A stretch of 64,000 nucleotides of DNA from Macrostomum lignano. Lineage: Eukaryota. The notes beneath the pieces were generated by a model that saw only the letters and a program-made list of their open reading frames with translations, was not told where the DNA came from and ran no database searches. Location: contig NIVC01001126.1 in assembly GCA_002269645.1 (NCBI GenBank), positions 263,687-327,686 of the forward strand. The letters are read 5' to 3'. Shown here piece after piece: positions 10,971 to 49,060 of this stretch (position 1 is the stretch's first letter; every line of letters starts with the position of its first letter). The position numbers and the translations under genes were made by a program.

Positions 10971-10980
10971 TCTCGCTCAC

Positions 10981-11306: not shown

Positions 11307-11424
11307 CTAGAAATATTCATGATGGATATATTGATTAGACCTGAATGAAGCATCAATTATGAGGGACATCTTGTATTGCCTCTAATATACATATAGGTCT
11401 GTCTGACGCCAATTAGGAATGCTG

Positions 11425-22857: not shown

Positions 22858-23154
22858 CATACACGCGCAACAGTCGGCCGAGTCGGCCGATCCGGCCGAC
22901 TGATTTGGTGGCCAACAAAGGAAGTCGCGAAAAGGCCCACCTGAAAAAATACCCAAGTAGTTGTACTAAGTAGCTGACGAGGCATTTTGGCTTAAAAGGA
23001 CAGTCATAGTTACTCCTGCCGTTTACCCAAAGTTGCGTTAATTTTGCTTTAGGGTTTTTTACATGTAAGTCGCATTTTTGGCCAAAAACTACGTCGCATT
23101 TTTGTTAAAACTAAGTCGCACGGCCGACCGAATTTTGGAGGTTGCTCATGTATG
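22858..23154. mobile_element. MITE, CATAC-type TIR, 8-bp TSD
   Basis: catacacgcgcaac...gttgctcatgtatg; TSD tcatggat. Interior is the reverse complement of 33084-33318. Confidence 0.88.
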
Positions 23155-25766: not shown

Positions 25767-26447
25767 GGATGCCCGTCAAAACAGCTACACAACAAAATGG
25801 CCACACGACAAAACGGCCACATAAAAAAAGGGTTGCAGATCGACTGTTCTATTCGTTATGTTAAGGAAGCTTCGTTATGTTAGGCCCCTAATTATTTGGC
25901 TGTTGCTGTGATCTAATTGCGCTCTACATACTTAAGCCACTCTCCCAAAGGCCCATTCAGGTGAGCAGGTGAGCAGGCAGATCGCAGCTGTTTCTGTTTG
26001 AAGTTTGGCAGAATATCATTTAATGGCAGGTAAGCCAGGGCCATCACCTTTCTGCAGAATCTACGCAATGAGTAAGACACTGCGTAGCTGCATGCAAGGC
26101 CAAGCTGCTGCAGATGGCGATACAGTGCTTGGCAAAAATGGAAGTTGCATCTGTGCAGCATTGCAGTGCTGAGCACAGTACGCGCAGCTACCCAAAATGC
26201 CTGCTCTCTCTCTCTGCAACCATCCACCTTTATTCTTAATTGACCAATGTCTCGGCCCCCATGTATACCACCCCCGATCATTCATCATTTATCTTTCTAC
26301 TTAAATGTACATTCAACCCTCCACTTTTCTTATCTCTTATTATTACAAATTATTACATTGTGTGGCCATTTTGTTGTGTGGCCGTTTTGATGGTATGGCC
26401 GTTTTGTCGTGTGGCCGTTCTGCGTGTGGCCGTTTTGACGGCACCCC
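25767..26447 (-). mobile_element. MULE (Mutator) internal-deletion derivative with a transposase fragment
   Basis: GG...CC termini, repetitive TIRs, 9-bp TSD gtcataggc/gtcatagac. Internal CNFHFCQALYRHLQQLGL...RRFCRKVMALAYLP...EWLKYVERN is the MULE transposase motif. Confidence 0.87.
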
Positions 26448-27699
26448 GTCATAGACAACTTAATTCGGTCTGTCTGCGACAGGGACTTTCTCCTTTATTT
26501 TAGCCACTTTAGCTACTAGGATTCACTTGTACTTAATATATTGTTAGTTTAAGGTCCTTATAAATAATCTTTTAAAATTTATTCTATCAACTTGTATTAT
26601 TTTCCTAGGCAAAGTTATGTAGAAAAATAGTTTATAAGTCTAAGCAAAGGTTTGTAGGCCTATATATGACTAGTTAATATTTGAACAACTTTAAAGTAGC
26701 AACCCTAGGTTAGCCACAATATTAGATATGTGTAACTATCAAGCTAGAAATATACAAGTTTTTTTCAAGACTGCAAATTGGCTAGAAAGATTATGTGATC
26801 AAAGCAGTCAATAAATAGGCCACAGAATGAAACAATTATGAGAGTACTACATCCTTTGAGAGTACAACTGGGAGAGTACATGAGAGTACAACTGGCTTTT
26901 GAAGTAGGGATTGGCAGATTTTTATCTCAAAGGCCAGATAAAGAATCTAGCTAATGGCTATAGGGGCAGATGAGAGTAGAAAGAAAAATTAATAGACAAT
27001 AAGAGAAAGAAGAAGTAAGAGAAAGGATAAGAAAATATTTAGACATTCAGAACTATGGCCATCCATCTTAGTGAGTGAGACTGAGTGGCTATCTTGTCTT
27101 ATACCCCTAGAGGCCTAGATTGCTAGATAGGCCTATACCCGATTATACCATTGAATTTGCCACACAAAAGCTATCAAGTAAATGGCAGGCTTTTTGTCAA
27201 ATTAAGTGCACTAAAAAAGGCAGTCCAGTGAGCCAAAAAATAAAAATGAAAAATAGGCAAAACAAATGTTCTTTATTCTTTAAAACCATAGCCTATCTAT
27301 AAGTAGGCCTATATATCCTCAAAAAAGTTTGAAATAAATATATAGGAAATTGTTCTGAAAACATGCATGGATATCCATCAGTAAACAAACCCACATGGCA
27401 CACACATCATTTCATTTCAGATTATGGACAGATAGAAAGAGACAGTATAGTTTGGAGCATGTGCATACACAAATTATAATCACTTTGGCAACAAGTCACT
27501 TTGGCGACAGTCACTTCAGTGACAGTCACTTTGGCAACAAGTCACTTCCAGGGTGCCCGCACATTTTGAGAAAGTAAAATAAAGGAGGCTATTTGACTGA
27601 TCCCAAAATAAAGGAGATTTAATTTGGTAACGTAACAATGACAGGCAATGTCTATCTAAGGCCTATATAGGCAAACTCTGGCCTTTTGCCTTTGCATCT

Positions 27700-28200
27700 C
27701 TATGTCCTTTGGGTCCTTTAAAACTTCTATCTTTTTTCTGTCTCCTCTCTTCTCTCTCTTATTTTATCTCTTTTCTATTCTTCCCATTCTCCTGTACTCT
27801 TTACTCTTTTCTTTTCACTCTTATTTTGCTCATTTCTATTCTATTTTTCTACTCTTTCCTGTATCCTCTAGGCTCTCTTATCTTTCCTCTTATCTCTCCC
27901 TTCTTCTTTTCTCTTTCCTTTGCTATCCCCTCTATCTCTTCTCTTCTTTTAACTCTTCTTTATTATCTCTTTTCTTTAATCTCTCCTCTTTCATCTGTTT
28001 TTTGCTCTCTCATCTTTACTCACATCTTTCTCCTCTCTCCTCCTCTTCTCTTTTCTTTTATATCCTCTCTCTCTCATCTTATCTCTCCTCTTTTTTCTTG
28101 TCTCTCTTATTTGCCTCTTCCCCTCTTTTGTCCTTGCACTCCTCTTCCTCCTCTTTTTTCTCTCCTTACCCTCCTGTCTATTCTTATATTTTATCTAGAT
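27700..28200. repeat. CT-rich low-complexity tract
   Basis: Near-pure pyrimidine strand; the overlapping ORFs are artefacts. Confidence 0.9.
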
Positions 28201-29639
28201 AAGAATAGGCCTAGGCCTAAATCTAATACATTTAAATTCTTGTTTTTATTAATTGGTAATAAGTATCAACTATCAATACATCAACATAATATTAAGTATT
28301 GGAATGTCAAAAATGGTCATGTTCCTACACTTTTAAATTAAGAAGGCCATCAATAGTACCTCCCCCCCTTTAAAGCAATTTTTCTTTAAATAAAGTCCTA
28401 TTATTTTTATGATTTTCAAATCATATATGCCATAGTATAGATCATGCTGGGTGCATGCCCAAACAAAAATTGATAAGTACAAATGCAAGCCAAAAAATTG
28501 ATAACAATAAATGACATTTTTTACATTGTGAGAATAAACAACCTTTTTTCATTGCATAAAAGACACTTTTAACAGATAATTTGGTTCATTTTTCTGCTTT
28601 TTTGCCAATATTATTTATAGTGGAAAATTGATACATGCAAAGATTTGTTTAAATGAAAAAAGTACAGCAGTAAGTAGTAAGAAGAAAGAAAAGAATAGAA
28701 ATTAATGCCAGGGTTTTTCATTTGAAAATATGAAATGTGGCACTTTGCCACAGGGTTTTACAATTGAACCTAACTTTTGGCTACTATAAGTTTGGCTATA
28801 TAAAGCAATGACTTCAAACTTGACACAATTTTTCTTTGATTTATTTTTCCTCCTATATACTTACACTAAAAATAAAAGTCTTTCTTGCTTGTATATGTGC
28901 AATCAATTTTCTCTCAAATGGCTTAACAGATTTTCATGTGACTGTATATTTGTCTTGGCTAAGAAATTGCTTAATGCTAAAGGGATTAAATATTCAAAAA
29001 CATGCTTTTTTGCAAAGGTCAAGCAAACTTTTTGACTTGAAATGCATTGTAAGAATGCTAGAAAAAAAACTGATTGGTTGAATTCTGATTATGAAATAGA
29101 TTGCATCATAACTGAAATATAGCTCTGACTTGAATTGTGTCACAGTATTGAAAATGTAGTGTGAAGTGTAGCACCAGACTTGATTTAGATTGCATAACCA
29201 TATTGTTAACTGATATTGACTGACTGAGAAATTGATTATATCATAACTGCTTTGTGTGATCTTGCTTGCAAACTCTATGCTTGGAGTTTGGAAAATGTTG
29301 AATTATAAGTTTTGTTTAATTAAAGTTTTTTAATGCCAAGTAAACTAAAAAACTTTTTAAAAAAAGCATTATGTAAAAAAAATCATAGAAGTGTCATGTA
29401 AAAATTATAGAAGCATCATGTAAACAATCATAGAAGCATCATATAAAAATCATAGAAGTGTCACATAAAAATCATAGAAGCATCATGCAACTAATAATAG
29501 AAGCGTCATATAAACAATCATGACGTGACATGACATGTCATGACATACCTCATATAGAAACTAATAAAAGTGTAATTTAAAAAATCATAGAAGCATCATG
29601 GAATAGTAAATGTCATGTCAAAATTAAATAAAGCTATTG

Positions 29640-30640
29640 TGCTCTGATTCTTAGGGAGAATTATTGAGATGTCAAGGCTCACAGAGAATACCTGAAATAT
29701 AAATGATTATGGGGGGTTTCTAAGATGCCAAAGCAAAAGTCAGAAGCTACTTCAAAGTACATGTAGTTTACTCAATTTTTATTATATTCTTTATTGGCTC
29801 GCCACAAGGGGGGCGCTGATAAAAGAAGAGTCATGTAAAAAGAAAAAAAGCACTATGTAGACATAAAAGAAGAGTAATGTTGGAGTTAAAAGATTCATTT
29901 GGGAATTGCTATGATGTCAAGGCTTGGGGGGAATCATTATAGTGCTATGATTCTTAAAGAAGGAATCACTAAAATGTCAAGGCTTAGAGGAGAAGAATTG
30001 CTGAGATTTCAAGGCTTTAGGGTTGGGTTAAAGTTATGTTTAGGTCAGGTTTGGGTTTATGGTTAGGGTTTAGAGGGTTTCAAGGTTGATAGGGGATTTT
30101 TCAGGTTTCAAGTTTTATAGGCGGCATCGCTAAGATGTCAAGGCTTATGGGGAAAATAGCTGAGATATCAAAGCTAAAGTCAGAAGCTACATATAGTTTA
30201 TTAAAAACTTTTTATTATATTATTTGTTGGCTCCTCATAGGGGGGTTGCTGATAGAAAAAAACAATTTAAAAAATAAAAGAAGCTTCATGTCAAAGTTAG
30301 AGATTCATTTGCGAATCCCTACGATGTCAAGGCTTGCAGGGAATCATTATAATGCTGTAGTGCTATAGTGACTCTTGGAGAGAATTACTGAAATGTCAAT
30401 GCTTTAGGGTTAGTGTTAGTCTAGGGTAAGGGTTAGGTTGAGATTTTTTTTATTTCAAGGGGGACATCGCTGAGATGTCAAAGGGAGAGTTGATATTTTA
30501 AGGCTTGTGAAGGGAATTGCTGACATGTCAAGGCTTATAAGAGACTACATGATGGGGCATATTGCAAAGAGACACTATATGTAGTTTATTAAAAAACTTG
30601 TAATGCATTTTTTAGCTCCTTAATGAGGACTGCTAATTGC
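29640..30640. repeat. Old degenerate ~430-bp tandem triplication with scattered ttaggg-like bits
   Basis: Recurrent gagatgtcaaggct and aaagtcagaagctac...tagtttatt blocks at about 29740, 30180 and 30580. Confidence 0.55.
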
Positions 30641-32312
30641 TAGTCTCTGTATAAATGTAATGTCTTAGCTCTATAACTCAATCAGGATAAGCATGTGAAG
30701 TTTGTCTGTTTTTTCTAGTTTTTTTGCTACTCTACTCATTCCCTCATAGCTTTATTTGCACCTCTATAGAAAGGCTTTTAGCCATGATAGTTTAATGAGA
30801 GATTCTAGCCACTGCCTTATTAAGAGTATTTTGTCACACAAACTGGCTTTCTAAGCACTTGACCTAATGCTATAGGATTTGCCCTAAATAGTATCAGTAT
30901 CACCCTGCTACTCTCTGGAGCATGGTGACTCGAGACTTATATTTTTTACCTTGAGGGCCCAATAGAGAATTTAGCTCATGGCTATAGACCAGATGAGAGG
31001 AAAATAAAGGGGATAGAGGAAAACGTTGATAAAACATGAGATAAAACATGAGAAAGAACATAAGAGTTAAAAGGAGAGAGTAAATAAAAGAATAGCAAAA
31101 AGAAGAGATGTGAGAGTAAAGAGAAAAAAGAAAAGAAAGATAAAAGAGCAGATGAGAGAGTATAGAGAAGAGATGAGATGAGAGGAGAGGAAAAAGTAGA
31201 GAGAGGAGAAAACAAATATCAGAGACTAGAATTAAGTAGTGCATGCTTTAGACAGATATTACTTGTCAATCTGTGGCAACCCCAATCAACAAAATCAATG
31301 GTTGCCTCAAATTTTTAAATATAACACAAATTTACTCCAATTTTTTTATTTAACTCTATTCTTACTATTAACAAGTTTTTTTAGTATAGCTTCACATTTT
31401 AATGCATGCAAAAAAGTTCTGGGGATTGGACTTTAGCAGGTTCAAAATCTGCAGGTTTTGGTAGCTTGTATAAAATAAAAATAAATGTTTTCAATGTTTA
31501 CAACTCAAAGCTCAAAAAAGAGGATATGCCAAATTTAAATTTAATGTGTGCCAAAGTGGCACCTAGCCTTCTAATGATTTGTGCCATTTTGGAAAAATTT
31601 AGCAAGGGCACAAATTTGGCACAAAACCCTAAATATAAGAGTGCAAAGATGAGAGATGAGAGATAAGATAATAGATAAGGGAGTATAGACCATGAGAGAA
31701 GATAAGAACAGAGAGGAGATAAAAAGATAAAAAATAAGTGAGTAAAGAGGAAAGAAAATAGGAGAGTCTCTGATGTAATATAGTATAGTATACTCGTATA
31801 GTAGTAAAATTTTGTAGAGGATAGTATTGCATGGTATAATTCAATTCATTATACCATACAAAATTTCATGCAAAAGATATAGCAAAGTTTTTTTCAAGTC
31901 TAAAACATAGTGAAGATAGAAAACAGTATTTTTTGAATAGCACACTTGGGGTAGAAATCTAGCACATTGTATACTTTAACCATACTTGAGCAGGCATGAG
32001 TTATCTGCATTTAACTGCTCTGTTTATCAATTCAATGCACTGTGTCTGGGCCATATACCATAGAAAAATTGAATCGCATATGATTGGCAATTATCTTCAT
32101 ATGAATGCGCAAATTCTTAAATGAAATTCTTAAATGAAAAATATAACCATGTTTTACTAAATAACTTATGTCTTTCTAACCATAACTGGCAAATATCTGA
32201 AACTTAAAGAAGTGTAATTCTCATTTGTTGGCCCATCAATCATAGAATCAAATTTGTAAACTTCGCCAGTAAAATCGAAAATTCACTTCAAAATTGGTTT
32301 TTCAAACTTCAG

Positions 32313-33048
32313 GACGAACCAAGCGAAAAGCTAGGCCAAGATTTAGAGCAGCTGAAGCTGCTAGAAGAATGCCAGTTCGAATCAGAGGAGCCAGAGTCAA
32401 TGCGCATATCGCCATTGGCTAGTGTGGCGCTCTCTGCCAAACTGATGCCACTTTTCCAAGATCGGGTTGATGGCGAATTCTACGTGTTTGATGGCGACTC
32501 TTTACTGATGGAGGCTGCGTCCACAGTGGGGTGGCAATATGGCCAGCAGTTGCATTTGTTCTATCTGGCCGAATCCATTCTGAAACTGCTCAAAGATCAC
32601 GGCGGTGACTGTCAAGTTGTTTACTTTAATAGTTTTCGCAATGATCCACTGATGGATCTGTTTAGGCGCGCTATGCAGTTACACCTTGCCGTCAACTGTT
32701 CAGTGCCTGTGCACACCGACTTGGCCAAGTCTTGCTTCGACCCAGCCTGGCTTCACTATTTGAAGGAGGAGAAGCCTCTGTTCTTTATGCTTCACGACGG
32801 TGTTGGCTATGGCGAATCTGCCGAACAGCGGCACGTGAATTTGGCTTTGTCTAGCCTGGCTCGCAGGGTGCCAGTTGCTTATGTTAGCAGTCTGCAGCAG
32901 AATGACATGAAGCTGCAAGCATCCTATGTACAGTGGATGCCACTGTATGGCAGACTATTTCAAAAGCTATCATGTACAGATCGATCGGCAATGGTCCCTG
33001 AAACTGATGATCATGTTGAAGCTTTAAAGACTGAGGCCGAGTTAATTG
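32313..33048 (+). CDS. DDX60: DDX60-like helicase exon A
   Basis: Acceptor ttcag|GAC, first ATG at 32400. EFYVFDGDSLL...QQLHLFYLAE matches the DDX60 N-terminus. Donor ATTG|gtatgt. Confidence 0.87.
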
Positions 33049-33083
33049 GTATGTTTTTAAATCTCTTTATTAGTTGATTAAGT

Positions 33084-33318
33084 CATACATGCGCAACCCC
33101 CCTGATTTACACTGGCCATGCGACTAACTTTTTGACCAAAAATGCGACTTACCTGTGAAAGAAACCCTAAAGAAAAAATTAACGAAATGTTGGGTAAACG
33201 GCAAGAGTCACTATGACTGTCTTACTAATGCTAAATGCCTCGTCATCTAATTAGTACTACGCCTGTATGTTTTTGGGTGGGTATTTTTACCAGGTCGGCC
33301 AGCAGTTGCGCATGTATG
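33084..33318. mobile_element. MITE, CATAC-type TIR, 8-bp TSD, in the DDX60 intron after exon A
   Basis: catacatgcgcaac...gttgcgcatgtatg with perfect TSD gattaagt. Confidence 0.9.
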
Positions 33319-33389
33319 GATTAAGTGTTTATAAGCTTGTTTATTTGAACTGCTGAGCTAATAACTTTATGATTTTTGTTTCTGTTCAG

Positions 33390-33810
33390 AACCAGGCAGC
33401 CGCCTTAAAGACCACCTCGCTGTTAGAGTTGCTCTCCGAGCTCTAGTTAAAGATACTAACATCGAAAGCAACGACGAAGTTATTGAAAAAGTGAGCCGCT
33501 GGTGCCTGTATTTTGCCTGCATGTCCACCATGACGCTGGACGACCGGCTTCAGCTTGTTGCTGCTACTAAAAGCGCCAATCAAGCCGCTGCTGCAGGCGA
33601 CAAGATAGAGGAGCAAAATTTGCTCTCTTCTTTGCATGAATTGGCCAAGCACCTGCGGCTCGAACTGCTGCCAATGAAGGGTCTCAACGAGTTCGCCGAT
33701 CCAGAGTCTGTCGCCGATCTTATCGACATTTTTGTCTATCGTCGATTTGGTCAAGCCTGGATTAACCAACTGCCCGGTTGGCATCCGCGAGCGCGTGAAA
33801 TTTTGGCTAA
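33390..33810 (+). CDS. DDX60: DDX60-like exon B
   Basis: ttcag|AA and GCTAA|gtaagt; phases 1 and 2 fit both neighbouring exons. Confidence 0.85.
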
Positions 33811-34005
33811 GTAAGTTCAGGCTTCAGTTTTCCGTTTAATTATGCTACAGTTTTTTTGTAATTTTTTAGTACACCTGCCTAAATGAGCAGGTGTGCTTCC
33901 TGCTCAGCCGCAGCTATTGCGCGGCGCATCTGAAGGCTGCGTACGGCCGTTCAGTCCAAGGACTGGGGGGGGGGGTCGCCATACAGCCTCAATAACCCCA
34001 GCTAA

Positions 34006-34078
34006 TGCTGGCACCCATTTTACAGCTGGGTGAACTGAAGCAATGCAGAGTTAAGTGTCTTGCTCAATCAAGGACACA
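34006..34078 (+). mobile_element. SINE core-like fragment
   Basis: gctggcacccattttacagctgggtgaactg...gttaagtgtcttgctcaa..ggacac resembles the conserved central domain of metazoan SINEs (from memory). Confidence 0.55.
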
Positions 34079-34823
34079 AATTGTTCCGAGTAAGTCGGAC
34101 GATAGTGTACGGCCAATATTAAAACGGTTTCTTAGGCTTCCCGGCTGAGTTTTTAACTTTTGTGACCAGCACAGAGAGAGGAGGAGGTCACGGACACGGA
34201 GTATTAACTTGGTGGATTTTTTTATTTATCCACCAATCGCTGCATATTTCTACGACAGCTTTCGGCAAAACTATTTCAGCCTAGGGACTGACAGAACTGA
34301 CCTCTGTAGCTAGCCACGCTATGTCAGCCTAGGACCAGCAAATTCAGCTATGGTCCAACCATACTCCGTAGACACGTGTCTCGAAAAAAAACCAGCTAAC
34401 AAGTGGTGGTTGGTTGAGATTGGATGGCCCTATGCTGAGATAGCTAGGCAATGGGGGTTGTCTGGAAGCGAGAAGACATGGTAATGGCCATAGACACGAG
34501 CGGCGATAGCGGGGGTGTGGGAGTGAAGCCCCCACTTACAACCATAGACTATTTTATCTTACGCTCATAGACTGGTTCGTTTTCTAAAATGATATCCCGG
34601 TAAATTGCTTTATTGTCAATTTCAAACGAATGACCGGTCATTGCTTGAATGTCGTTGCCTTAACGTAAATTACCAGTACCATAGACATTTTGAACAATGG
34701 CTATGTTTTAACCGTGACTATAAAAATAACAGGACGGTAAATAGCTCGAGTCTGTAAATTCTGATTTTTAGTGATGCTACATTAATTAAAATTTTTTTTA
34801 TAACGGCGTTCGCTTTCTTTCAG

Positions 34824-36854
34824 ATACGAAAGCTACGCCTCTAAAATTTGTACCGAGCTGCAAAAGCTGAACAGTGCCGATCAATCGGATGCCTCGCCTC
34901 TATTGTCGCTGTCAATCTCTGAGCAGGCGCTCCCACATGAGCCTGTCATTGAGCAGGCGGCTGAAATGGCGCCGCTTCAGCGTATCGACAATCGTCTGTT
35001 GAAAGAGTTTGCCGGCGAAATTCTTGACAAACTTGGCTCGTCTGGTTGCATATCGTTAACTAACGAGCCTGGACAGAACTCGTCGATGCTATTCGACGAG
35101 CGCTGTCATTGGCACGTTAATCGGGAGCTTCGCGACGATTTAGAAGAGCAAGGCGAGCCTGAGCTGTCTTCTAATCCTATTCTAAGGCAGAGACAGCTGA
35201 AGAGTATTCAGAAGTACAAGAATTACATCAGCATGTACGGCGAGTCGCTGCATGGCGAGACTAGCGAGACTATCGTACTGTCAACCGGTTCTGACGGCGC
35301 GTCCGCTGCATCTGCCGGTGCTAACGAGAAGCCGAAATCTGCTAACCAGCAAAAGCAGAAGCATCAGAAGCAGCCAAAAGGCAAGTCAAAGCCAGTTTCT
35401 AAGGCTGATGCCATCAAAGAAGAGAATTTGCGCGCCAAAGCCGACAAAGATACGAAGAAGCTAAAGGAGCAGTGGAAAAATCTGTTGCCGGGCGTTAAAA
35501 AATTGGAACCGGCTCAGGCTATCGCTGAGGCCACGCGTATGGCGGAGTCCTGCACAGTGCAGGATCGAATTTTCGAGGAGCCGGTACTTTTCGTAATGCG
35601 AGAGCAGTACAAGTTGTGGAAGACCAGCTGTGCTAGTAGTGGAGGCAGCGGTAAGTCTTTCAGCGCCTTGGCAGATCTAGTGCGGACCCTGCACAAGTAC
35701 ACAACCGAGCCGTTGGTTAGCATGATTAGTTCTGAATTGCGCGTCAAGATTGCCGAATTATTTATCATGGTTGGATTTAAAGAGGCTGCCGCTGTCTCTA
35801 GTGTAGACGCGGAGCGCTTAAAACATGTGCAAGTTGAAAAAGAATGCGTCTGTCCACTGAATTATCGCGACTTTCAAATGCAGCACATGGGCCACCTGAT
35901 GCAGAGAAATGTTCGATTCGATCCAGATCCCAGGGTGAAGGGATTCATTCCCGACACCTGGCAGAGAGAACTGCTAGATGTGGTTGACAGGCGCGAGTCT
36001 GCCGTTATTGTTGCTCCAACATCGTCTGGAAAAACATTCTGCTCTTACTACTGCATGAAAAAGGTTCTGGAGATGAGCGACGAGGCTGTCGCTGTTTACG
36101 TAGCGCCAACCAAAGCTTTAGTGAATCAGGTTCAGGCTTCCATTAGTGCCAGGTTTTCTAAGCCAAACCTGACTCCCGGCATGGAGCTATGCGGAGTATT
36201 CACTCGAGACTATAATCACAAAGCCACTAGCTGTCAGATTTTGGTGACAGTGCCGCAGTGCCTTGAACTGCTGTTGCTGAGTCCCAGGCGTCAAGGCTGG
36301 GCTAGCCGTATTCGCTATGTGATCTTTGACGAAGTTCACTGCATCGGCACCGGGATCGGGGGCGTTGTCTGGGAATATCTGCTCTGCCTAATCCGGTGTC
36401 CGTTTCTTGCCCTGTCGGCAACTATCTCTAACAAAGACTATTTTCACGACTGGCTGCAGACCATCAAGCAGTTTGTGCAGGTTCAAGACTCGACTCTTCT
36501 GAAGCAATCTCAGCCGATGCAGCCTAAGAAGCAACAGCGACAGAAAGGTGCCGCTCCTGCTGCTGTAGAAGGTTACAAAGTGAATCTGGTGACCTACTCT
36601 GAGCGCTATTCAGACATTCGCACTTCCGTTTATCTGCCCAAGAGTGAATTTATTGCTGAAGTTAATCCGTGCGCTTTTCTTAGCGACAAACTATTGCGAA
36701 TCAACGGATTCCCAAGGAATTTGAAGCTGTCACCGAAGGAATCTACCGAGGTTTGGTCAGCCGCTTTGCAGTGCTTCACGGACGATCCAGCTGCAGCTAA
36801 GGCTCTGCAGAAATTTAAACCGCAATCGTTTTTTGGCACTGAGCCAATTACTAG
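34824..36854 (+). CDS. DDX60: DDX60-like exon C (DExH helicase domain 1)
   Basis: PDTWQRELLDVVD, APTSSGKT, YVAPTKALVNQV, IFDEVHC, FLALSATISN; ttcag|A and ACTAG|gtaata. Confidence 0.95.
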
Positions 36855-36906
36855 GTAATAATTAATGACCAATCATTTTTTAATGTCTTTAGCCTACCAG
36901 TTAAAG

Positions 36907-37370
36907 CAGGGGTCAGCAAACCCCGGCCCGCCAAGCCTTTCTATCCGGCCCGCTCAAGGTTTGCGTCTCTTCTTAGCTTTCTTCTCCCTTCTCTTCTCCC
37001 TTCTCTTCTCCCTTCTCTCCCTTCTCTTCTCCCTTCTCTCCCTTCTCTTCCTTCTCCCTTCTCTCCCTTCTCCCTTCTCTCCCTTCTCCCTTCTCTCCCC
37101 TCTCCCTTCTCTCCCCTCTATCATCTCCCTTTTCTCTCCTCTCTCTCATCTCTCTTCTCTTTATTCTCTTCTCTCATTTCTCTCTCCCTTCTTTTCTCTC
37201 TACCCTCTCTTCTCTCCTCTTCCCTCTCTCCTCTCTGGTCTCCCTTCTTTCCCTTCTATCCTCTCTCCTGTCTACTCCTCTATTTCCTCTTCTATTTCTC
37301 TTCCTCTGCCTCACAGTCATGCGCCGGATTCTTCATCTGGCCCTTGAGGTAAAAAGTTTGCCAACCCCTG
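36907..37370. mobile_element. hAT/Charlie-like MITE with an internal CT microsatellite expansion
   Basis: caggggtcagcaaac...gtttgccaacccctg; TSD degenerate. Confidence 0.8.
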
Positions 37371-37616
37371 AGTAAGACTCTGAAAAGACAAAAGCATACT
37401 TGAGCAACACGAGGCGATTGGATATTTTCCGTGACAATAGCCAAAATAGCTATTTAAACTCTCATTCTCTCAAATTAAATCTCAGAAGAAAAAAAGAACT
37501 AATATTTTTTTAGGTGCTTCCGATATTTTATAATGACCTCGTGTTGCACCTGTAAGGTTTTGGCCCTAAAATTGTGAAACACTTCCCACCCACCGCTTCA
37601 ATTTAAAAAAACGCAG

Positions 37617-38262
37617 AACGCAATTTCGGGAACTGGAAGTCGGCCTGAAATCGACTGTGTCTGAGCTGCTTCGCCAGAGTCCACATGCCAAGTCTACCCA
37701 GCTGCTAACTACAATTCAGTCAATTGAGGAGCAGCAGAATGTGACTCAACAGTTTGAGTTCCTATCCGACGTTGATCTTATTGAAAAATTTCCCGATCTA
37801 ATCGATCGGCTGCGTTCCGAGGGTCGCTTGCCAGCTTTGGTGTTTATGAACGATCGTAAAGGCATTGAAAACCTTGCCGCGTCGCTTGTCGATCGAGCCA
37901 ATGATCGGATTAAGCAAGCCGTTAATCCTAATCTGCTAGAGCGCATGGAGAAAGCTCGCGAAGCGATGGCCATCGCCGCCAAGCGCAATCGCGACAAAGA
38001 GGATTCGGACGATGAGAATCCAGCCGAGATCGAATTGGAGTCCTACTACAGAGATCGGCTGGAACTGCGCAGCAAAATTCAGGCCTGCGCTTATTTTAAA
38101 CCGCAGGCTGTGCAAGAATCTTTTCTCAACAAAGTGCTGGAGAAGCTGCTTGATGAAGATGTGAAGCATATGCTGGAATTGGGCGTCTGCTATCATCATG
38201 CCGGTTGTTCTTCGAAGCACCGACAAGCTGTTGAGATGCTGTTCCGTAGCGGTCATTTGCAG
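37617..38262 (+). CDS. DDX60: DDX60-like exon D
   Basis: acgcag|A; LPALVF, GVCYHHAG, VEMLFRSGHLQ|gttagt. Confidence 0.93.
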
Positions 38263-38384
38263 GTTAGTTTGGGTTGTTTGCTTCTGTTGTTCAGCTTTGA
38301 GTAGCTGCTTTGTTCCCCTCACCCCACCGGCCCACCTTGTAAGCCGTTATGGAAATCAATCATTTTGCATCAGGTCGCTGAAAT

Positions 38385-39780
38385 ATAGTGCCTGCGGCGT
38401 TAAAGTGAGTGCCTGCGGCGTTAAAGTGAGTGCCTGCGGCGTTAAAGTGAGTGCCTGCGGCGTTAAAGTGAGTGCCTGCGGCGTTAAAGTGAGTGCCTGC
38501 GGCGTTAAAGTGAGTGCCTGCGGCGTTAAAGTGAGTGCCTGCGGCGTTAAAGTGAGTGCCTGCGGCGTTAAAGTGAGTGCCTGCGGCGTTAAAGTGAGTG
38601 CCTGCGGCGTTAAAGTGAGTGCCTGCGGCGTTAAAGTGAGTGCCTGCGGCGTTAAAGTGAGTGCCTGCGGCGTTAAAGTGAGTGCCTGCGGCGTTAAAGT
38701 GAGTGCTTGCGGAGCTAAAATGAGTGCACTGCGGCGCCAAAATGAGTGCCTGCGGCGCCAAAATGAGTGCCTGCGGCGCTAAAATGAGTGCTTGCGGAGC
38801 TAAAATGAGTGCACTGCGGCGCCAAAATGAGTGCCTGCGGAGCTAAAATGAGTGCACTGCGGCGCCAAAATGAGTGCTTGCGGAGCTAAAATGAGTGCAC
38901 TGCGGCGCCAAAATGAGTGCCTGCGGCGCCAAAATGAGTGCCTGCGGCGCTAAAATGAGTGCCTGCGGCGATAATGTGAGTGCCTGCGGCGCTAAAATGA
39001 GTGCACTGCGGCGCCAAAATGAGTGCTTGCGGAGCTAAAATGAGTGCACTGCGGCGCCAAAATGAGTGCTTGCGGAGCTAAAATGAGTGCACTGCGGCGC
39101 CAAAATGAGTGCCTGCGGCGCCAAAATGAGTGCCTGCGGCGCTAAAATGAGTGCTTGCGGAGCTAAAATAAGTGCACTGCGGCGCCAAAATGAGTGCCTG
39201 CGGCGCCAAAATGAGTGCCTGCGGCGCTAAAATGAGTGCTTGCGGAGCTAAAATGAGTGCACTGCGGCGCCAAAATGAGTGCCTGCGGCGCCAAAATGAG
39301 TGCCTGCGGCGCCAAAATGAGTGCCTGCGGCGCTAAAATGAGTGCTTGCGGAGCTAAAATGAGTGCACTGCGGCGCCAAAATGAGTGCCTGCGGCGCCAA
39401 AACGAGTGCCTGCGGCGATAATGTGAGTGCCTGCGGCGCTAAAATGAGTGCCTGCGGCGCCAAAACGAGTGCCTGCGGCGATAATGTGAGTGCCTGCGGC
39501 GCTAAAATGAGTGCCTGCGGCGCTAAAGTGAGTGCCTGCGGCGCTAAAATGAGTGCCTGCGGAGCTAAAATGTGTGCCTGCGGAGCTAAAATGAGTGCCT
39601 GCGGCGCTAAAATGAGTGTATTTGGCGCCAAAATGAGCGCCTGCTTGCGGCGCCAAAACGAGTGCCTGTCTAGGGCGCCAAAACAAGTGCCTGTGACACT
39701 AAAACGAGTGCCTGTGATAGTAAAATGAGTGCCTGCGGTGCAAAAATGTGCGCCTGTGGCGCGAAAATGAGCGCTAACAA
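38385..39780. repeat. 21-bp minisatellite filling a DDX60 intron
   Basis: gagtgcctgcggcgttaaagt (perfect block to about 38705), then gagtgcctgcggcgccaaaat variants. Confidence 0.96.
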
Positions 39781-39910
39781 TACCGATTCCCAAAATAATT
39801 TGCATGTAGGAATTTAGTCATGTACATGTAGAATTCTTGGCTTTATCCCCTCTTCCCACTATAAAATCCCATAGTGTTTTACTTTGGAATCTCTCTCGCG
39901 CCCCGTGCAG

Positions 39911-40351
39911 GTGGTCACAGCAACTGCCACCCTGGCTCTGGGCGTTCACATGCCCTGCAAAACTGTCGTATTCGCTGGCGATGACAAGTTTCTGGACGCG
40001 CTCAACTATCACCAGATGGCCGGTCGGTCCGGCCGGCGTGGCTTCGACAACATCGGCAACATTGTGTTCTACGGCGTGCCCGCCTCTAAGATTGCTCACC
40101 TGATCCAAGCCGACCTGCCCGAACTCAAGGGCGGCTTTCCGCTCACCTGCGCTTTCGTTCTCAGACTGTTGCTTCTGACTGGGAATGCCACTGATCCGGA
40201 GGTGGCCCACGCTAAAGCTGCTACGGTTTTGGAGCACCCGTTTGCTGCGCACCAGAAGCCGGATATGATGCAGCAATTGCGATTGTTCTTCCTGTTCAGT
40301 GCGGAGTTTCTGCACAGGCAGGATCTTATTAATGAGTTGGGCGCTCCTCTG
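39911..40351 (+). CDS. DDX60: DDX60-like exon E (helicase motifs V and VI)
   Basis: gtgcag|VVTATATLALGVHMPCKTVVF...YHQMAGRSGRRGFD; donor CTG|gtgagt. Confidence 0.95.
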
Positions 40352-40662
40352 GTGAGTCTCATTGAGTAACAATTTGGCACCGTGTGTTTTTCCCAAGCTG
40401 GATGCCATTTAGTCTAAGAGTCCTTTCACAGTCGTTGCAGGTAACACAGGTAAAATAGTGAAAGAAGTGACTCTCTAGACGACTATAAAACGACGAGAGT
40501 CAATTTGAGGCGTTTTATTGCCCGCGACTCTGAAACTAACAACTGTGTACATTTAGTCTACTTGTGTTAGTAGAAAGTTAAGCTTTAACAACGACTTTTT
40601 TTGCGACTCCTTGTTTTACGATTCTCTGCAACTCACGTGACTCGCTCTCGGCCATTCTTCAG

Positions 40663-41096
40663 GACCTGGCCGGCTTAGTATGCCACATGGGCTACCAGCA
40701 GCCTGGCAACTTCGTGCTCACCTATCTGCTTCGATCTCCCGCTCTGCGCCAGCTGTGCGAGCCGGCCAGCAAACAGCTGCCGTCAATTCACTACGGATTC
40801 TATTGCGAGGGCTGTCAGACTGGCGAACCGATAGTTGGTCAGCGATTCAAGTGCACCAAGTGCTGGTCTGACTACAGCCTGTGCTCCAACTGCTACTCCG
40901 GCCGGCCCAATCACAGCCGGGGCCGGCAGCAGCACACGGCCGCCGATTTTGAGCGTCAATTGCCGCCGTTGCGAGTGCAATTCTCCGACGAGACGTTGAG
41001 AAAATTGGTTCGAATCCTGTGCCACCTGTTCACTAAGATGGAGCTGGCCCGGTCTCTGGTTAAAAGGACGGCTGATGGAGCTCTGCATTATTTAAG
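40663..41096 (+). CDS. DDX60: DDX60-like exon F containing a ZZ-type zinc finger
   Basis: ttcag|DLAGLVCHMGYQQPGNFV; HYGFYCEGC..PIVGQRFKCTKC..YSLCSNCY..H..H; donor AG|gtaa. Confidence 0.9.
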
Positions 41097-42044
41097 GTAA
41101 TAAAATACCTGCCGTTTTTCCGCTAGAATCATTGATGCCGATTGGTAAACCTCTGACAAAATACGTTTATCTTTGCTGATATGCTTTTACCCTACTAGTA
41201 GTAGTTCATGCTTGGAAAATGTTTGCGACGGGGATAGACAAAGAGTTTCTCTACAAATATAGAGCAGTTAAGACGCAGAGTGTACATTCCTCAGGGGTAT
41301 AGTTTTGTCTCGCATAGAAACGCCTAACCGCAGTACCCCTGTGACACTTGTCTCTGCCTGGCTGAAAGCTTGTACTGAGTTAGTAGGCTGGGTTGGAGGG
41401 TACCCGCCAAACTTAATTCGTCCGATTTTTTGCTTTTAGCACCGGTATCTTGATCCGGTTTATTGTCCGGAATCGGCCCATATCCACAGTGTAAAGAAAC
41501 CGGAACAGAGCCGGACAAAAAGTTACGTTTCAGGACCAGGCGTTCAGATTTTATCGCCTTTGCCCTGTTTTATGTCCGGTGATTATTCCGAAGTTTGTTC
41601 CGGTGCCTGATCCGGTCAAAGAGAGCCGGATGTTGCGCCGGTTTTGTTCCGGTGCCTGATCCGGTCAAAGAGAGCCGGATGTTGCGCCGGTTGCTGGACC
41701 GTGGCATTGACCGATCCAAATGGGATCGAGACCGGACCGAAAGCCGGACCGGCCCGGTTTAATCTTGAACCGTTCTCTCCGGAGCAGGAGGCAGTCTTCC
41801 ACGCGAATAGAAAATGAAAAGAAAATTGAAGAGTTTAAACTGAAGTACTTTTTTTTCAATCCAGGCATTTGTCAACCTTTCCATTTCCATGGCAATTTAT
41901 TTTTACTTCCGAAACATCGAAAGCACCGAACATCGCAAATCACACATGGTCCCTTACAAATGCGTCGCTTCCCTTCTGGCGCTCACAAATGAGTCATAAA
42001 GGTGATAAAGGTGATAAAGGACGTTCAATTGGCCGAACCAACCG

Positions 42045-43156
42045 TCAAACCGCAAGCTTCAGCAAGTCAACGAGGCTACCGGCCGACTGCAAATCGTCCA
42101 TGCTCGTGACGAGGTTAGCCGTCGTCACTGAAGCCGCCAACGTATCCGTAGCCGCAGTCGTAGTCGCAGGCGAAGGGTAAATGAGAACCGGATGGTTCTC
42201 ATCAGGCTCCTCCATGACGACAACGATGGCATGGGAGTCTGTCGTCGAGGAGGCCTTCTTCGGCCTCTTGGTAGCGCTTGGCCTCGGGCCGCTCGATCCG
42301 GGCCTCGGGCCGGTGATACGGCGGCACTTCAGTTTCGGCAGACCCTGGCGAACGCGTGCCGTCTCGCGGCAACGCGAGAAAGCGCGTTGTAGTTGGCGCT
42401 TAGTGGCGATGACGCCAACGTTCTGCAGCCACTGCTTAGCGATAAGCAGTTTGGCTGGGTTAGCGGCAGCAGTCAGCCGGTCCCCCAGCTTTCGGCCCGA
42501 GAAATTTGCGCCTGAAAACTCCGTCTCAGAGAACAGTGCCCGCAAGAGACACCGCAACAGCGACGAATGTTCCGAACGCAGTATTGCGGCGTAGTCCGGA
42601 CGCTCTTCGTCGATGTCCACATGTGGCTGGCCAGCCTTTTCTTTGGCCTGCAAATATGTACGGAGATGAGCTTCCAGTATAGAACGGCTCCCGACCTTGA
42701 CAAATATATTCGGTTGGCGGTCCGACAGTGCGACGCGCCCACCGCTATTACTAGCACCGGCCGAGTTTTCAGCGCTGCAGGCAGTCATTATCGCGTGGGT
42801 GTCGCTGGCAGACAAGGCAGCGTCAGCGACGAAGCGTTTGGCCGAGAAATCACTATCGTCCGCGCTATCACAGCTCATGCGTGTTTCGTCGTCGCTGTGA
42901 CCAGCGACGTGTGTGCTAGTATCAGCATTGGTGGACAAATTGTCCGGGTCGGCAACAAGCATAGTGGACGCCCTGATCAGGAATGCGTTGCATGATTGCG
43001 CCCTGTTTTGCATCTGCCGAATGACGTTGTCCTTGCGACGAATCTCACGCTCAAGGCTGCTCTCGCGCAGCGCCAAATAGGAGGTTCGCTCCTTCGCGTC
43101 GTCCAGACGCCGGCGCAGCTCCACTTCGGCAGCCGACTTGTCTCGTATCTCGCCTC
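42045..43156 (-). CDS. Transposon accessory protein exon 2 (coiled coil plus BEN/DUF4806-like domain)
   Basis: gacag|GA in frame with exon 1; LLRALFSETEFSGANFSG...NPAKLLIAKQWL...AFSRCRETAR resembles a BEN helix bundle. Confidence 0.7.
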
Positions 43157-43225
43157 CTGTCAGTGGAGACAAAAGTTAATGTTACTCCGATCAATCATAC
43201 ATTCCCCAGAACATTCAACACTTAC

Positions 43226-43958
43226 TTAGTGTCTCCACTAAGATGTCCGCCTTGCGACTTTCCAGTAGCAGGCTTCGACAGGACGCGCAGCCTCGAGGTG
43301 GCTCTCTGGTCGGGGCGTGCACATTCGTGAGGCGACAAGAAGCCGTCGCTTCTTCACGACTTTCGAAGGGCCCACGGATGAGAGTGCCGATCCACCGACG
43401 GGCAGTTTTCCTATTACTTTTGGCCACTTTAATGGCAACAACACTCCCAACAGAAACTGGGATGGGTCCGTCGCTGCGGCGCTGCACAATATTCTCCGTA
43501 GTGGAGACAACGTCCGTGCGTTCCCGGGATTCGTCATAGCGCATGATGAAGAAGCGCTCGGTAGGCTCTTGCTTGTACGGGAGCATATCGGATCCTTCTT
43601 TCGACGGGTTGCCACCGTCCCGGTTGACTCGCCTGCCACGTGTGTCTCGATCGCCAGAATCAGTAGCTGAGCACCCCGCCTCATGGGCGAAGCAATCGTC
43701 TGCGTCTGCACCATTGGGCGTCGGATTTGCGGTTGGCGGCTTAGGTATGGTCGTCTGGACAGCATCGATCACGGGTGTTAGCGTGTCACTGCCAGCTGGT
43801 AGATTACCATTCGCAGCTGGCTGATCGTCCTTCGGCTTCGCCTTCGCCTTCTTCAGAGATCTTGGAGCTTTAGACTTCGAAGCAGTACTAGCCGCAGCGG
43901 CGGGAGCTGCGGGAGCGGCAGCTTTTTTTCCGCTTGCGAAGCAGGTCGCCTTGCCCAT
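43226..43958 (-). CDS. Transposon accessory protein exon 1
   Basis: ATG to CTAA|gtaagt; 69-nt intron 43157-43225; the spliced product is 614 aa. Confidence 0.7.
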
Positions 43959-44669: not shown

Positions 44670-45653
44670 TCAATTCTTTCCGTGGGCCTTCTTCTCCTGC
44701 TGGAGCTCACGCAGATCCCTTAGTGGCCGTCTGCGGCGGCGTAGCGGTCGCATTGCCGCCACAGGTGCTTCCGGCGGAGTCTCGGGCATGTCAATCGCCC
44801 AGAACTGACGTGGATCCGCAATGGGTTTCGGTTGGTTCGACCGGTGTTTGCCGGCCTGCTGCAGTCGTCTTTGGCGGCTTTCTGGAGACAGGTTAGAATA
44901 CCACGACTCGCAGTCCGGACAGCAGTGCGCCTGCAATTCTAGCCTGTCGGCTTTGCGCCTGCATGGGAAGACGCACGCCGGTCTCGAAGTCCTCTCCGGC
45001 AACAGGTTGTAATCAGCGCGGATTTGAGAAGACGACATGCCGGCATACAGGCCTGCAAAGAGACTGACCCGGCGGCTGGGTTCCGGTGCCGGCTCTGCGG
45101 CGGGTGGTACGTGGTACATGTCAGGGCCCTGCGTCTCAAAACCCTCCTCGTCGTCGTAGTTGAACCTGTCGACTGCCTCGGGTTCCGGTGCCGGCTCTGC
45201 GGCGGGTGGTACGTGGTACATGTCAGGGCCCTGCGTCTCAGAACCCTCCTCGTCGTCGTAGTTGAACCTGTCGACTGCCTCGGGTTCCGGTGCCGGCTCT
45301 GCGGCGGGTGGTACGTGGTACATGTCAGGGCCCTGCGTCTCAGAACCCTCCTCGTCGTCGTAGTTGAACCTGTCGACTGCCTCATCGGCGGGTTCCTCAT
45401 TCGATGCCGCCACGGGTTTCGCTAGCACAAGTGGAGTCGAATCGAAAGGCCACATCGACTGCAACACTTGCGTACTAGGAATGTCATCTAATGCGACGAT
45501 GGCCCTATGCGCCCGCACCATGGACCCCGTGTTAAAAACTGGCGACGTGGGACGTGAACGGCCGAGTCGAAGGAGCTCAGAACGGAGCAAACGGTTCTCC
45601 TCTGTGAGGGCGCGGCAGATGGGACAGCTGGCTGCGTGTGACCAGTGGTCCAT
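44670..45653 (-). CDS. Transposon-borne CtIP/Sae2/Ctp1-like protein, 327 aa
   Basis: RRKADRLELQAHCCPDCESWY...RRLQQAGKHR...ADPRQFWAIDMPET aligns by eye to CtIP [21 protein letters not shown]...KKLASCSRHR...NTPENFWEVGFPST; N-terminal CxxC plus short coiled coil. Confidence 0.85.
   Translation of the reverse strand: MDHWSHAASCPICRALTEENRLLRSELLRLGRSRPTSPVFNTGSMVRAHRAIVALDDIPSTQVLQSMWPFDSTPLVLAKPVAASNEEPADEAVDRFNYDDEEGSETQGPDMYHVPPAAEPAPEPEAVDRFNYDDEEGSETQGPDMYHVPPAAEPAPEPEAVDRFNYDDEEGFETQGPDMYHVPPAAEPAPEPSRRVSLFAGLYAGMSSSQIRADYNLLPERTSRPACVFPCRRKADRLELQAHCCPDCESWYSNLSPESRQRRLQQAGKHRSNQPKPIADPRQFWAIDMPETPPEAPVAAMRPLRRRRRPLRDLRELQQEKKAHGKN
45078..45383 (-). repeat. 3 x 102-bp in-frame coding repeat
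   Basis: EAVDRFNYDDEEG(S/F)ETQGPDMYHVPPAAEPAPEP three times. Confidence 0.97.
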
Positions 45654-46254: not shown

Positions 46255-48551
46255 TCAATGATATGACAACTGTGGGTGAGGCAACAGTGCGATGTGGCTC
46301 TCGGAAAGGACACACGAACCGATGACATCCTCAAGCGGTAGTAGTAGCGGATCTCCGTAGTCCGCCAAATCGCCGAATGGATCGGCTGCAAGCCGCCGCA
46401 CGTGAGCGCAACGGCAGCCACGCCTAGCGGAATTGCCACGTACAGCACATAGTGCCTCTAACGGGTCCTGATCTGGTTCGCGGACCGGTAGAATTAGGAC
46501 CCGAAGTGACACTTGTGCACCGGTACTACTAATGGCTTCAACTCGTGCAAAACGAAATGTCGTCGGACGAAACCCGGAAATTGCAACGAAACACGATGCT
46601 ACAGTGCGGCGCAGTGGGCGGTTATCGTTTTGTCGGCTGATGAAAACTACAATGACCAGCCCTGAGGGCAGTGTCGCACTGCGCCACCCATCCAGCATGC
46701 CATGCGGTCGTCGAAGAACTATGGAGTTACGGAGAACGATTTCCGTGCGCCGATGGCTCCGTTGTCGCCTCTCCAAGCCCTCAGCACCTAGCAGACGCGC
46801 TCCAATCTGGTTGGCGGCTATCTGTCTCTCCACTGACGTAACCACGTCAGCCTCGTTGTTGCTCGAGCCATGAAGGAGCTGTTGTAATCGTTTGTGCATG
46901 GTTTCGAACAACCCAGTTGATTGATGATGTATCGGCCCACCGGAGTCTACAGCGCTCAGCATGTGGCAGCAAACTTGATGGGCGTTGTACGTAAGCGCCC
47001 GAGTGGAATATAAGCGCGGTAAATTTGCGAGGAAGCATCTGAGGGACACCTCGACGTGGTCCAGTTCGTCCTTTGGCCCACCTTCAAGTCCCATCCAAAA
47101 CACAGCCGTTGATAGAACTAGTAAATGGTTGTAGTGGTCCGGCGGCAGAAAATCACCCAGAACGAGCGGAGCGAACACTAAAATCCACATTTCTAGTTCG
47201 TGTCCACGAAGATGGCGCAGGTCCTTCAGCTTCCTAACACTGTGGCGTTGCACTGATCGTGGCACGAGAATGCGATTGAGACGCTCGCCGACATCGCCAA
47301 GTCTGGGGTGCAGGTCCGGACAGTTAGTGTCTGCACGGTCTGGCTTCTCATTGCGGATTGCGAACATCTGTAGCAATATCCGACGAACGAGCCCGCCGCA
47401 CAACTGGTGCAAATAACAGGGCGGACAACCTTTTATAAAATCAAAGCCAGGCAGCCTGCTTAGAGGAGAGTGTCCGTACACACCGAGTACGTCGCGGCAA
47501 GTACCACCGCCGTTGCTCACATGTAGATCGGCAAGGTGCGAAGTGTCAGCAGCATTACGCACTGTTGTCTGTGTACAGCCTAGCATAGCAGGAGCGTTCA
47601 ACATGGCGGGTGTAGCTTCGACGTGAAAAAGTCGCCCGCCGCCTTGCAAGTAACCGGTCCGCAGATAGCATTTGTCGCAGTATTTTCCGGAAAAGCGACG
47701 CATGCATAGAGCGTCCGCCCTCGCCGGGGCGTCCATCATCCCAAGGAGGGGATGGAGGCGCAGGACGCAAGTCTCGCCGTTGGCGTTGTTGTACGTTACA
47801 CCTATGGTACGCAGGCTGGACAAGACGTTTACCATAACAGGCAGAAATGCGGCGGCCTTGACTTTTTGCTTGCCAGCCCACACTCCTGCGATGAAAACGT
47901 ATCGCAGTTTAACTCGGTCGTGTACCTCTACGATGGAAATGTAGAATGGGCACACTTCGACGCAGCTAGTACTGAACCGAGGAAAACCATCGAAGCAGAA
48001 AACGTACGACAGATCGGCTCGGCGCTGTACATCGATGACCTCCAGAAAGTCTCGGTACAACGAGCTGTTGTACACGTGCAAAACGTCCGGCTGCACGTCG
48101 CGGTCAGCAGGCCAAACGACGTTGTCAAGAAGTCCACCGCTCTCGATAGACTGTCGGATCTGCTGACGCACGTCGAATGCGTAAAAGTTGGCCACAGATT
48201 CTTCGCCGCAGTGTGCACAGACGTCACCATCGGAAACGTGCCGAAAACGAGTGCGACGCATGCAGCTATTGCAAACGGCGTTGCAAACCGTCGAACCAAT
48301 CGCTGACTGCGCTGAGCTGACGCACGACTCCAGACTTCGTCTTGTTCGCGGTAGACTACAGCCTGGCATAAGGCGATGAAGCAGCGCCATCAGTTTGTCG
48401 ACTACATGATGCTTCATGTGCGTCTCTATGACGAACAGCATAATGTCTGACGCAGCCTGGCCCAGCGTTCCCGGAAGCGCTGGATGGAACGGCTGATGCA
48501 GTTGTGCATCCGGTACCGGCAGCGGTGCGTCTTCGTCGCTGTCAAAGTCGC
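46255..48551 (-). CDS. EnSpm/CACTA transposase exon 2
   Basis: CxxC motifs, FCFDGFP, FIAGVWAGKQK, MDAPARA..FSGKYCDKC, YLHQLCGG, YNAHQVCCH..GPIHHQSTGLFE; uninterrupted frame. Confidence 0.9.
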
Positions 48552-48648
48552 CTTTGATCGAAAATGAAACGAATGAAATGACTTTAGAGGGAGGTGTATA
48601 TGCATCTGCATCGCAATATGCAATTATAATGTATGTGACATTACTTAC

Positions 48649-49060
48649 TGTCACCGACATCTGAGAAGCTACTACCAGAGTCAGATGAGGATGCGACATC
48701 AACGCTCTCACGATTAGTCTCGTTGTCTGCAGATGCAGACTCACTGTTACAGTCGTCCGCAGGTTCGGTATTGTCACTGTCAGCCGATGGGTCGACCTGA
48801 TCACAGCATGCTTGTTGACCAGATGTGCCACCGTCACTGTCACCAGGAGCAGGATCAACAGTAACAGCATCACTGTCATCGTCACTGCTAACAGCGCCGT
48901 TAGAAGCTGCACTTGCAGCGTCAGCGTCAGCTGACGTGCCAGCGCCGCGTTTCTCCACGGGGGATCGCGATCGGGCTGGAGTTGCCGCATTTAACTTTCT
49001 TCGAAACCGGTATGCCCGCATGTACAACCGCCTGTGCAGCCTTTTTTCATCGTCCTCCAT
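48649..49060 (-). CDS. EnSpm/CACTA transposase exon 1
   Basis: MEDDEKRLHRRLYMRAYRFRRK (basic) plus an acidic tract. GACA|gtaagt to tcaaag|GC (97-nt intron) joins in frame to give 902 aa. Confidence 0.78.

Follow-up and report, generated by a model that had tools for sequence, protein, structure and literature searches.

A CtIP/Sae2-family protein of Macrostomum lignano with an aspartate in the column of the CDK site

Homologous recombination is confined to S/G2 by a textbook switch, the cyclin-dependent kinase (CDK) site on CtIP/Sae2. Here we describe a CtIP-like gene on a stretch of 64,000 nucleotides (nt) of Macrostomum lignano DNA (GenBank assembly GCA_002269645.1, contig NIVC01001126.1, positions 263,687 to 327,686 of the forward strand), referred to below as the window, with all positions counted from its first letter. 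The encoded protein carries an aspartate, Asp280, in the alignment column where almost all relatives have the phosphorylated serine or threonine. We favour the reading that this is the host's own CtIP gene, that its CDK switch has been lost and that the aspartate probably serves as a partial charge mimic, and we would put the probability of this reading at about 0.5.

In the described systems, phosphorylation of human CtIP T847, or of S267 in yeast Sae2, by CDK licenses resection, and the T847A mutant is defective (PMC2666608). An engineered acidic residue in the human protein, T847E, allows resection after CDK inhibition, but this resection is weaker and comes with radiation sensitivity and reduced end joining (PMC2666608). 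Phosphorylated S267 has been modelled, with mutational support, between R77 of Rad50 and R187 of Mre11, while human T847 contacts RAD50 R79 and Sae2 S267E keeps part of its activity (bioRxiv 10.1101/2023.08.05.552090). A partial bypass of CDK control by an acidic substitution, which an earlier reading of the DNA made from its letters (the sequence-only reading) had put forward as known, is accordingly documented (PMC2666608; bioRxiv 10.1101/2023.08.05.552090). Ctp1 of Schizosaccharomyces pombe represents a different solution in which Ile283 faces Leu77 of Rad50 and activation proceeds without CDK (bioRxiv 10.1101/2023.08.05.552090). A description from 2009 placed the CDK site in almost all CtIP/Sae2 orthologues, with fission yeast Ctp1 as the only known exception. 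Literature searches, which were not aimed directly at that question, returned no natural Asp or Glu at the T847 column of an animal CtIP.

Family membership and the residue in the CDK column

The CtIP-like gene occupies 44670..45653 on the minus strand, as do all of its parts given below, and appears in the list of open reading frames (ORFs) as a single uninterrupted coding exon of 327 amino acids (aa) plus a stop codon. The Pfam profile of the SAE2/CtIP C-terminus (PF08573) matches this ORF with E=2.7e-4 and a score of 22.4 bits (curated cut-off 19.8), and a phmmer search with the C-terminal 143 aa against 1.84 billion cluster representatives gave 101 matches at E<=1e-3. Matches from gar and eel are labelled DNA endonuclease RBBP8, and those from a sea anemone, a shrimp, a hagfish and two tunicates RBBP8 or Ctp1 C-terminal domain; uncharacterised or hypothetical proteins of a chiton, amphioxus, a nemertean, a brachiopod and a beetle are also among them. 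Together with an architecture common to two relatives discussed below (P0102 and P0002), these matches identify the gene, at the level of sequence, as a member of the CtIP/Sae2/Ctp1 family, which agrees with the identity proposed in the sequence-only reading. No relatives were returned when the C-terminus was used as query in a word-indexed protein database or when IMG/VR was searched with the protein, a metagenome scan with the CtIP alignment found nothing, and nothing matching the protein was found in PDB, where the CtIP entries are N-terminal fragments only.

The conserved C-terminal Sae2/CtIP domain covers about residues 225-300 (44754..44981), with the Pfam match proper at residues 261-292 (44778-44873). 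We regarded a column as strongly conserved if one residue class was found in at least 85% of 102 relatives, which gave 19 columns. The CtIP-like protein retains 16 of them, including both cysteines of the CxxC motif, the K/R-H-R motif, Pro281, W285 and Thr292. The CxxC motif itself reads C245-P-D-C248 (44910..44921), and both Cys columns are 99-100% conserved in the 102 relatives. K-H-R at residues 269-271 (44841..44849) takes the place of the family's R-H-R, and in these three columns all relatives (100%) have K/R, H and K/R, respectively. The three departures are one hydrophobic column, one Ser column with Gly both here and in the nearest relatives, and the S/T column that holds Asp280. As 16 of the 19 conserved columns are kept in an intact ORF, the Sae2 domain is under constraint and the aspartate is not a sign of general decay. 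The Ser/Thr-Pro CDK site is the sole family hallmark that the protein fails, and its loss does not bar membership because S. pombe Ctp1, which lacks the site, is an accepted member.

The peptide on which the sequence-only reading was built, KHRSNQPKPIADPRQFWAIDMPETP, is encoded at 44775-44849 within the ORF, and its GAT codon at 44814..44816 was confirmed as that of Asp280, directly followed by the conserved Pro281. The column was assigned against P0105, a mouse-type CtIP of 893 aa, in which the Thr of Thr-Pro is T843 and that of S-T-Q is T855, 50 and 38 residues before the C-terminus, respectively. Human T859 corresponds to mouse T855 (PMC6605744), and with this offset of four residues mouse-type T843 is human T847. 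Both the phmmer alignment and an independent MAFFT L-INS-i alignment of 103 domains set Asp280 on T843 and Thr292 (ACT, 44778..44780) on T855, with the same spacing of 12 residues between the CDK column and the second Thr in the CtIP-like protein and in P0105. The aspartate therefore does sit in the T847/S267 column, as had been claimed, the two alignments being in agreement on T843 as the counterpart of human T847. In this column a Ser or Thr followed by Pro stands in register in 88 of the 101 phmmer matches, about eight more being displaced by gap placement. In the MAFFT alignment S or T is found in 100 of 103 sequences, and the exceptions are the CtIP-like protein (Asp), P0001 of M. lignano (Ala or Gln) and P0033 (Glu). 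By these alignments an Asp at the T847 column is a real rarity, since about 98% of relatives have S or T there.

The same cannot be said of the second site. Thr292, in the column of mouse T855 and human T859, is followed by Pro and not by Gln, and among the 101 phmmer matches this column has TQ in 32, TP in 25 and SP in 4. Thr-Pro is found in chiton, amphioxus, shrimp and sea anemones, and judged from these matches it is an ordinary, common invertebrate state. The sequence-only reading was correct in reporting TP at this site, but it overstated the significance of it, given that TP and SP together (29) are nearly as frequent as TQ (32). Compared with vertebrate CtIP/RBBP8, represented by P0105 and the proteins of gar (P0027) and eel (P0065), the CtIP-like protein is alike in the CxxC motif, (K/R)-H-R, Pro-x-x-F-W and the Thr 12 residues after the CDK column, whereas it differs in length (327 aa against about 850-900 aa), in having Asp instead of the CDK Thr and in having Thr-Pro instead of Thr-Gln.

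Outside the domain the protein is built from a few short elements. A CxxC motif and a helix-like stretch rich in Leu, Glu and Arg (residues 9-32, 45558..45629) align in MAFFT with the coil motif at the N-terminus of P0102 and P0002 and are a candidate for the family's coiled-coil or tetramerisation region; Pfam gave no match to the CtIP_N domain in the 327-aa protein. The middle part is an in-frame tandem repeat at 45078..45383 (102 nt in 3.0 copies at 99% identity according to Tandem Repeats Finder), and each of its 34-aa units carries an acidic DDEEG-S-E-T-Q motif, including the TQ. The acidic S-x-T motifs of this repeat resemble the CK2-phosphorylated SXT motifs that bind the FHA domain of Nbs1 in S. 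pombe Ctp1. Towards the C-terminus lies a basic tail, RRRRRPL (residues 305-311, 44721..44741), which is common to P0102 and P0002 and in which R306, R307, R309, P310 and L311 are invariant in the full-length MAFFT alignment. Besides Thr292-Pro, S/T-Pro sites occur at S37, T73 and S256.

Nearest relatives and the role of Asp280

By far the best phmmer match (E=6.9e-24) is the hypothetical M. lignano protein BOX15_Mlig004387 (PAA54340.1 / PAA88737.1; P0001 / P0102), which is 53-56% identical to the CtIP-like protein within the domain and of which P0102 is the longer form. Its T847 column holds Ala or Gln, depending on gap placement, and no S or T. A full-length alignment revealed a plan common to the CtIP-like protein, P0102 and P0002, consisting of an N-terminal motif rich in Leu, Glu and Asn, a DDEGSET-type acidic motif (present twice in P0102), the Sae2 domain and an RRRRPL tail. 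The metagenomic P0002, at 40% identity, has this same architecture and keeps the Thr-Pro. BOX15_Mlig004387 thus resembles the CtIP-like protein in N-terminal motif, acidic motif, domain, basic tail and the lack of S/T in the CDK column, and differs from it in having Ala or Gln rather than Asp, a multi-exon gene, a greater length (at least 481 aa) and different neighbours. A further relative without S/T-Pro was found on a 910-bp contig (L002) of Logan assembly SRR31628425, with an Ala at the T847 column flanked by Asp. The L002 sequence is interrupted by a single premature in-frame stop within the conserved domain and could be a pseudogene or reflect an assembly error. In the three closest sequences the column therefore reads D, A/Q and A, with retention of the Pro beside it and of the F-W motif. 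Based on this comparison, the clade nearest to the CtIP-like protein seems to have lost the CDK site without conserving an acidic residue in its place.

A second group of sequences shows that an acidic residue can be held in this column. In the CtIP C-terminal exon of the P0033 cluster (P0033 and P0108-P0111; loci L004 and L005; from ENA/Logan assemblies), Glu-Pro occupies the T847 column in five of five members, and the T859 column is Asp or Glu in all five, which makes this a natural doubly acidic motif. Contig L004 of this animal lineage has ADAMTS-like genes as well. The lineage is like the CtIP-like protein in that Pro follows an acidic residue at the CDK column, but it has Glu and not Asp, and its T859 column is acidic whereas the CtIP-like protein keeps a Thr.

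These patterns can be read in more than one way. It is possible, if less probable than our favoured reading, that the site was simply released, the clade having re-wired the contact between CtIP and RAD50 so that the position requires no charge and the Asp is neutral or nearly so. The variable column with its retained Pro and F-W motif fits this reading, and S. pombe Ctp1 offers a precedent, as it activates Mre11 without the site and without CDK, in combination with a hydrophobic switch on Rad50. On the other hand, Ala at this position is strongly defective in both yeast and human, Asp is a single nucleotide step from Ala and could equally be a compensating gain of charge, and the P0033 lineage conserves its Glu in every member. 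It is very improbable, by comparison, that the gene is a redundant and decaying paralogue, in other words a drifting copy of the real CtIP gene that is no longer regulated. Low identity to the M. lignano protein outside the domain, a recent expansion of the coding minisatellite and the premature stop in the L002 relative would fit such a history, but the 327-aa ORF is fully open, the repeat expanded in frame and 16 of the 19 conserved columns, with both Cys, H-R, Pro281, W285 and Thr292, are intact.

In the reading that we prefer, the CtIP-like protein would be the organism's own short CtIP/Ctp1-type cofactor of the MRE11-RAD50-NBS1 (MRN) nuclease, with a putative N-terminal helix followed by several acidic S-x-T-Q motifs and then by the C-terminal Sae2 domain with its basic tail. 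The clade would have given up the canonical CDK switch of the C-terminal motif, as in S. pombe Ctp1, and Asp280 would provide a permanent negative charge where a phosphorylated Thr or Ser normally connects two Arg residues, one in RAD50 and one in MRE11. Owing to this permanent charge, CDK phosphorylation of the position is probably not needed for the protein to engage and co-activate the nuclease. Judging from T847E and S267E, however, Asp280 would be only a partial substitute, with a weaker constitutive charge, and cell-cycle gating may come from elsewhere, namely from Thr292-Pro, the three other S/T-Pro sites, the TQ motifs of the repeat or the pattern of expression. We infer both the action of the Asp as a charge mimic and the shift of regulation to other parts of the protein or its expression. 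Engineered human CtIP-T847E and yeast Sae2-S267E are the closest parallels, with an acidic residue in the same column and some resection without CDK, although these are engineered Glu residues acting as partial mimics while the Asp described here is natural. S. pombe Ctp1, which did not appear among the phmmer matches and is compared by its description in the literature, is likewise short and without a CDK site in the column, but has a hydrophobic Ile facing Rad50 Leu where the CtIP-like protein has an acidic residue. A precedent for an acidic residue is the Glu-Pro of all members of the independent P0033 lineage.

Several observations weigh against this reading. The nearest relative has Ala or Gln and L002 has Ala, so the acidic residue is not conserved in the clade, and Asp280 could be neutral. 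Asp is also shorter than Glu and far from a phosphate. Furthermore, the CtIP-like gene is intronless as opposed to the multi-exon gene of its M. lignano relative, their identity within the domain stays at the 53-56% given above, and the gene may have a paralogous or retrocopied origin. The gene directly upstream, here called gene A (46255..49060, minus strand), is an orphan, and the order of its Cys pairs and hydrophobic blocks is reminiscent of tnp2/CACTA-type DDE transposases, with negative results in the profile tests. The proposal of the sequence-only reading that Asp280 is a natural phosphomimic is consequently right as to the column and weakened as to the function, given the Ala or Gln of the nearest relative and a second relative, L002, without S/T-Pro. 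Its further step to activity independent of the cell cycle does not follow, because Thr292-Pro leaves a minimal CDK-type site in the motif. Loss of one site does not mean that cell-cycle or checkpoint control is lost.

Genomic setting and the selfish-element question

The sequence-only reading had placed the CtIP-like gene in a selfish element that cuts DNA, for which activity at any time would be of use. In this scenario the element would carry the gene as cargo, its nuclease or transposase might be gene A, and the Asp would give activity at any stage of the cell cycle to the benefit of the element. The scenario has some appeal, as gene A, the CtIP-like gene and the downstream gene B form a compact group on the same strand, none of the databases searched yielded relatives of gene A or gene B, and the CtIP-like gene, in contrast to that of its M. 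lignano relative, has no introns. We nevertheless consider it unlikely. Around 39.8-52 kb we found neither terminal repeats, inverted or direct, nor a target-site duplication, the best inverted match near the cluster being 13 nt long (E=0.28), not extending and with no duplication beside it. Pfam and NCBIfam searches of gene A, gene B and the flanking ORFs found no transposase, integrase, polymerase or capsid domains, and no viral domains were found in the window. The CtIP-like gene occurs only once in the 64-kb window, and searches of IMG/VR and of the metagenome collections gave no relatives. Both neighbours, gene A and gene B, are intact and contain spliceosomal introns. GC content at third codon positions (GC3) is 0.56-0.67 in gene A, the CtIP-like gene and gene B, compared with 0.51-0.67 in the SRPRB and DDX60-like exons, a codon composition like that of the host. 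Finally, the homologue BOX15_Mlig004387 sits in a plain host context, its multi-exon gene lying between an acetyl-CoA synthetase gene and an EMP24 gene, and no relatives of gene A or gene B were seen near it. The selfish-element frame for the CtIP-like gene is thus unsupported on present evidence. That the gene and gene A move together, as a DNA element of a kind not yet recognised, is less likely than the broader interpretation given in the next section.

The two neighbours are given here for context only. Gene A consists of two exons with a GTAAGT...AG intron of about 107 nt between them. It is intact and specifies a protein of about 925 aa, of which the part encoded by the first exon is acidic and Ser-rich. 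An apparent frameshift at its start could be ruled out, as this canonical intron joins both frames. No relatives of gene A were found in Pfam (searched with the whole protein and with pieces), NCBIfam, PDB sequences, the word-indexed protein database, IMG/VR or the metagenome scan, so that its identification as a transposase is not supported, although it may be a transposase of a kind that the profiles do not recognise, and a single-sequence AlphaFold2 model was unusable with a mean predicted local distance difference test score of 36. Gene B (42045..43958, minus strand) has two exons (ORFs of 247 and 375 aa) with a short GTAAGT...AG intron and encodes an intact protein of about 610 aa; no relatives or domains were found for it in Pfam, NCBIfam or PDB sequences. 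A similarity between the N-terminus of the CtIP-like protein and the end of gene B exon 1, which has a CxxCR motif, was not significant (E=0.55).

Elsewhere the window contains an exon at 1249-1872 (minus strand) for most of the beta subunit of the signal-recognition-particle receptor (SRPRB, E=8.6e-37) and a DDX60-like helicase gene at 32400-41100 (plus strand) with PIN-like_DDX60, DEAD/ResIII, Helicase_C and ZZ domain exons. Arrays of a 21-nt minisatellite lie at 38245-39750, within the span of the latter. The only recognisable mobile-element gene of the window is a Tc1/mariner transposase ORF at 61047-61784 (plus strand) with DDE_3 and HTH_Tnp_Tc3_2 domains. Just upstream of gene A and on the opposite strand, 49847-50200 (plus) gave a weak match to the UBC-like domain 1 of FANCL (E=0.029, below the cut-off), and the neighbouring plus-strand ORFs had no matches. 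The GC-rich island at 32-52 kb was considered as foreign DNA and rejected as such, since its GC3 matches that of host exons and coding density accounts for it. CpG observed/expected is 0.1-0.3 at 26000-32000 and 54000-60000 as against about 1.0-1.2 across the gene-rich 32-50 kb.

Very large minisatellite arrays are found at 6046-8221, 9883-13320 and 54259-59600; one minisatellite array is built of about 32 copies of a 67-nt unit that are 98-100% identical, and several minisatellites with units of 21-25 nt create long spurious ORFs on both strands. A repeat resembling a short interspersed element (SINE) lies at 33861-34097, and its core looks widely conserved. It shares 84-86% identity with two copies in the M. 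lignano locus L001, and these two copies match each other at 83%. An inverted repeat pair of roughly 140 nt (22960-23099 and 33118-33260) is separated by 10 kb, and its left arm resembles positions 5644-5708 of L001.

Implications for the CDK licence of CtIP

What is new here is a CtIP-family protein with an unusual regulatory residue, which is a modest extension of a known family. The finding gives no support to the claim that a selfish element brings along a deregulated resection factor of its own. A broader interpretation, which we hold only tentatively and rate as doubtful at this stage, is that a clade of free-living flatworms has exchanged the universal CDK licence on CtIP for a hard-wired acidic residue, and that at least one other animal lineage has independently done the same. 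If this were true, the start of resection would no longer be gated by CDK at the interface between MRN and CtIP, and control would be left to the second Thr-Pro site or to an expression limited to cycling stem cells. Lineages with a natural Asp, Glu or Ala in the CDK column offer natural comparisons on how necessary the switch is and by what it can be replaced, and they lead to a clear prediction, at the level of sequence, on the co-variation of RAD50 and MRE11.

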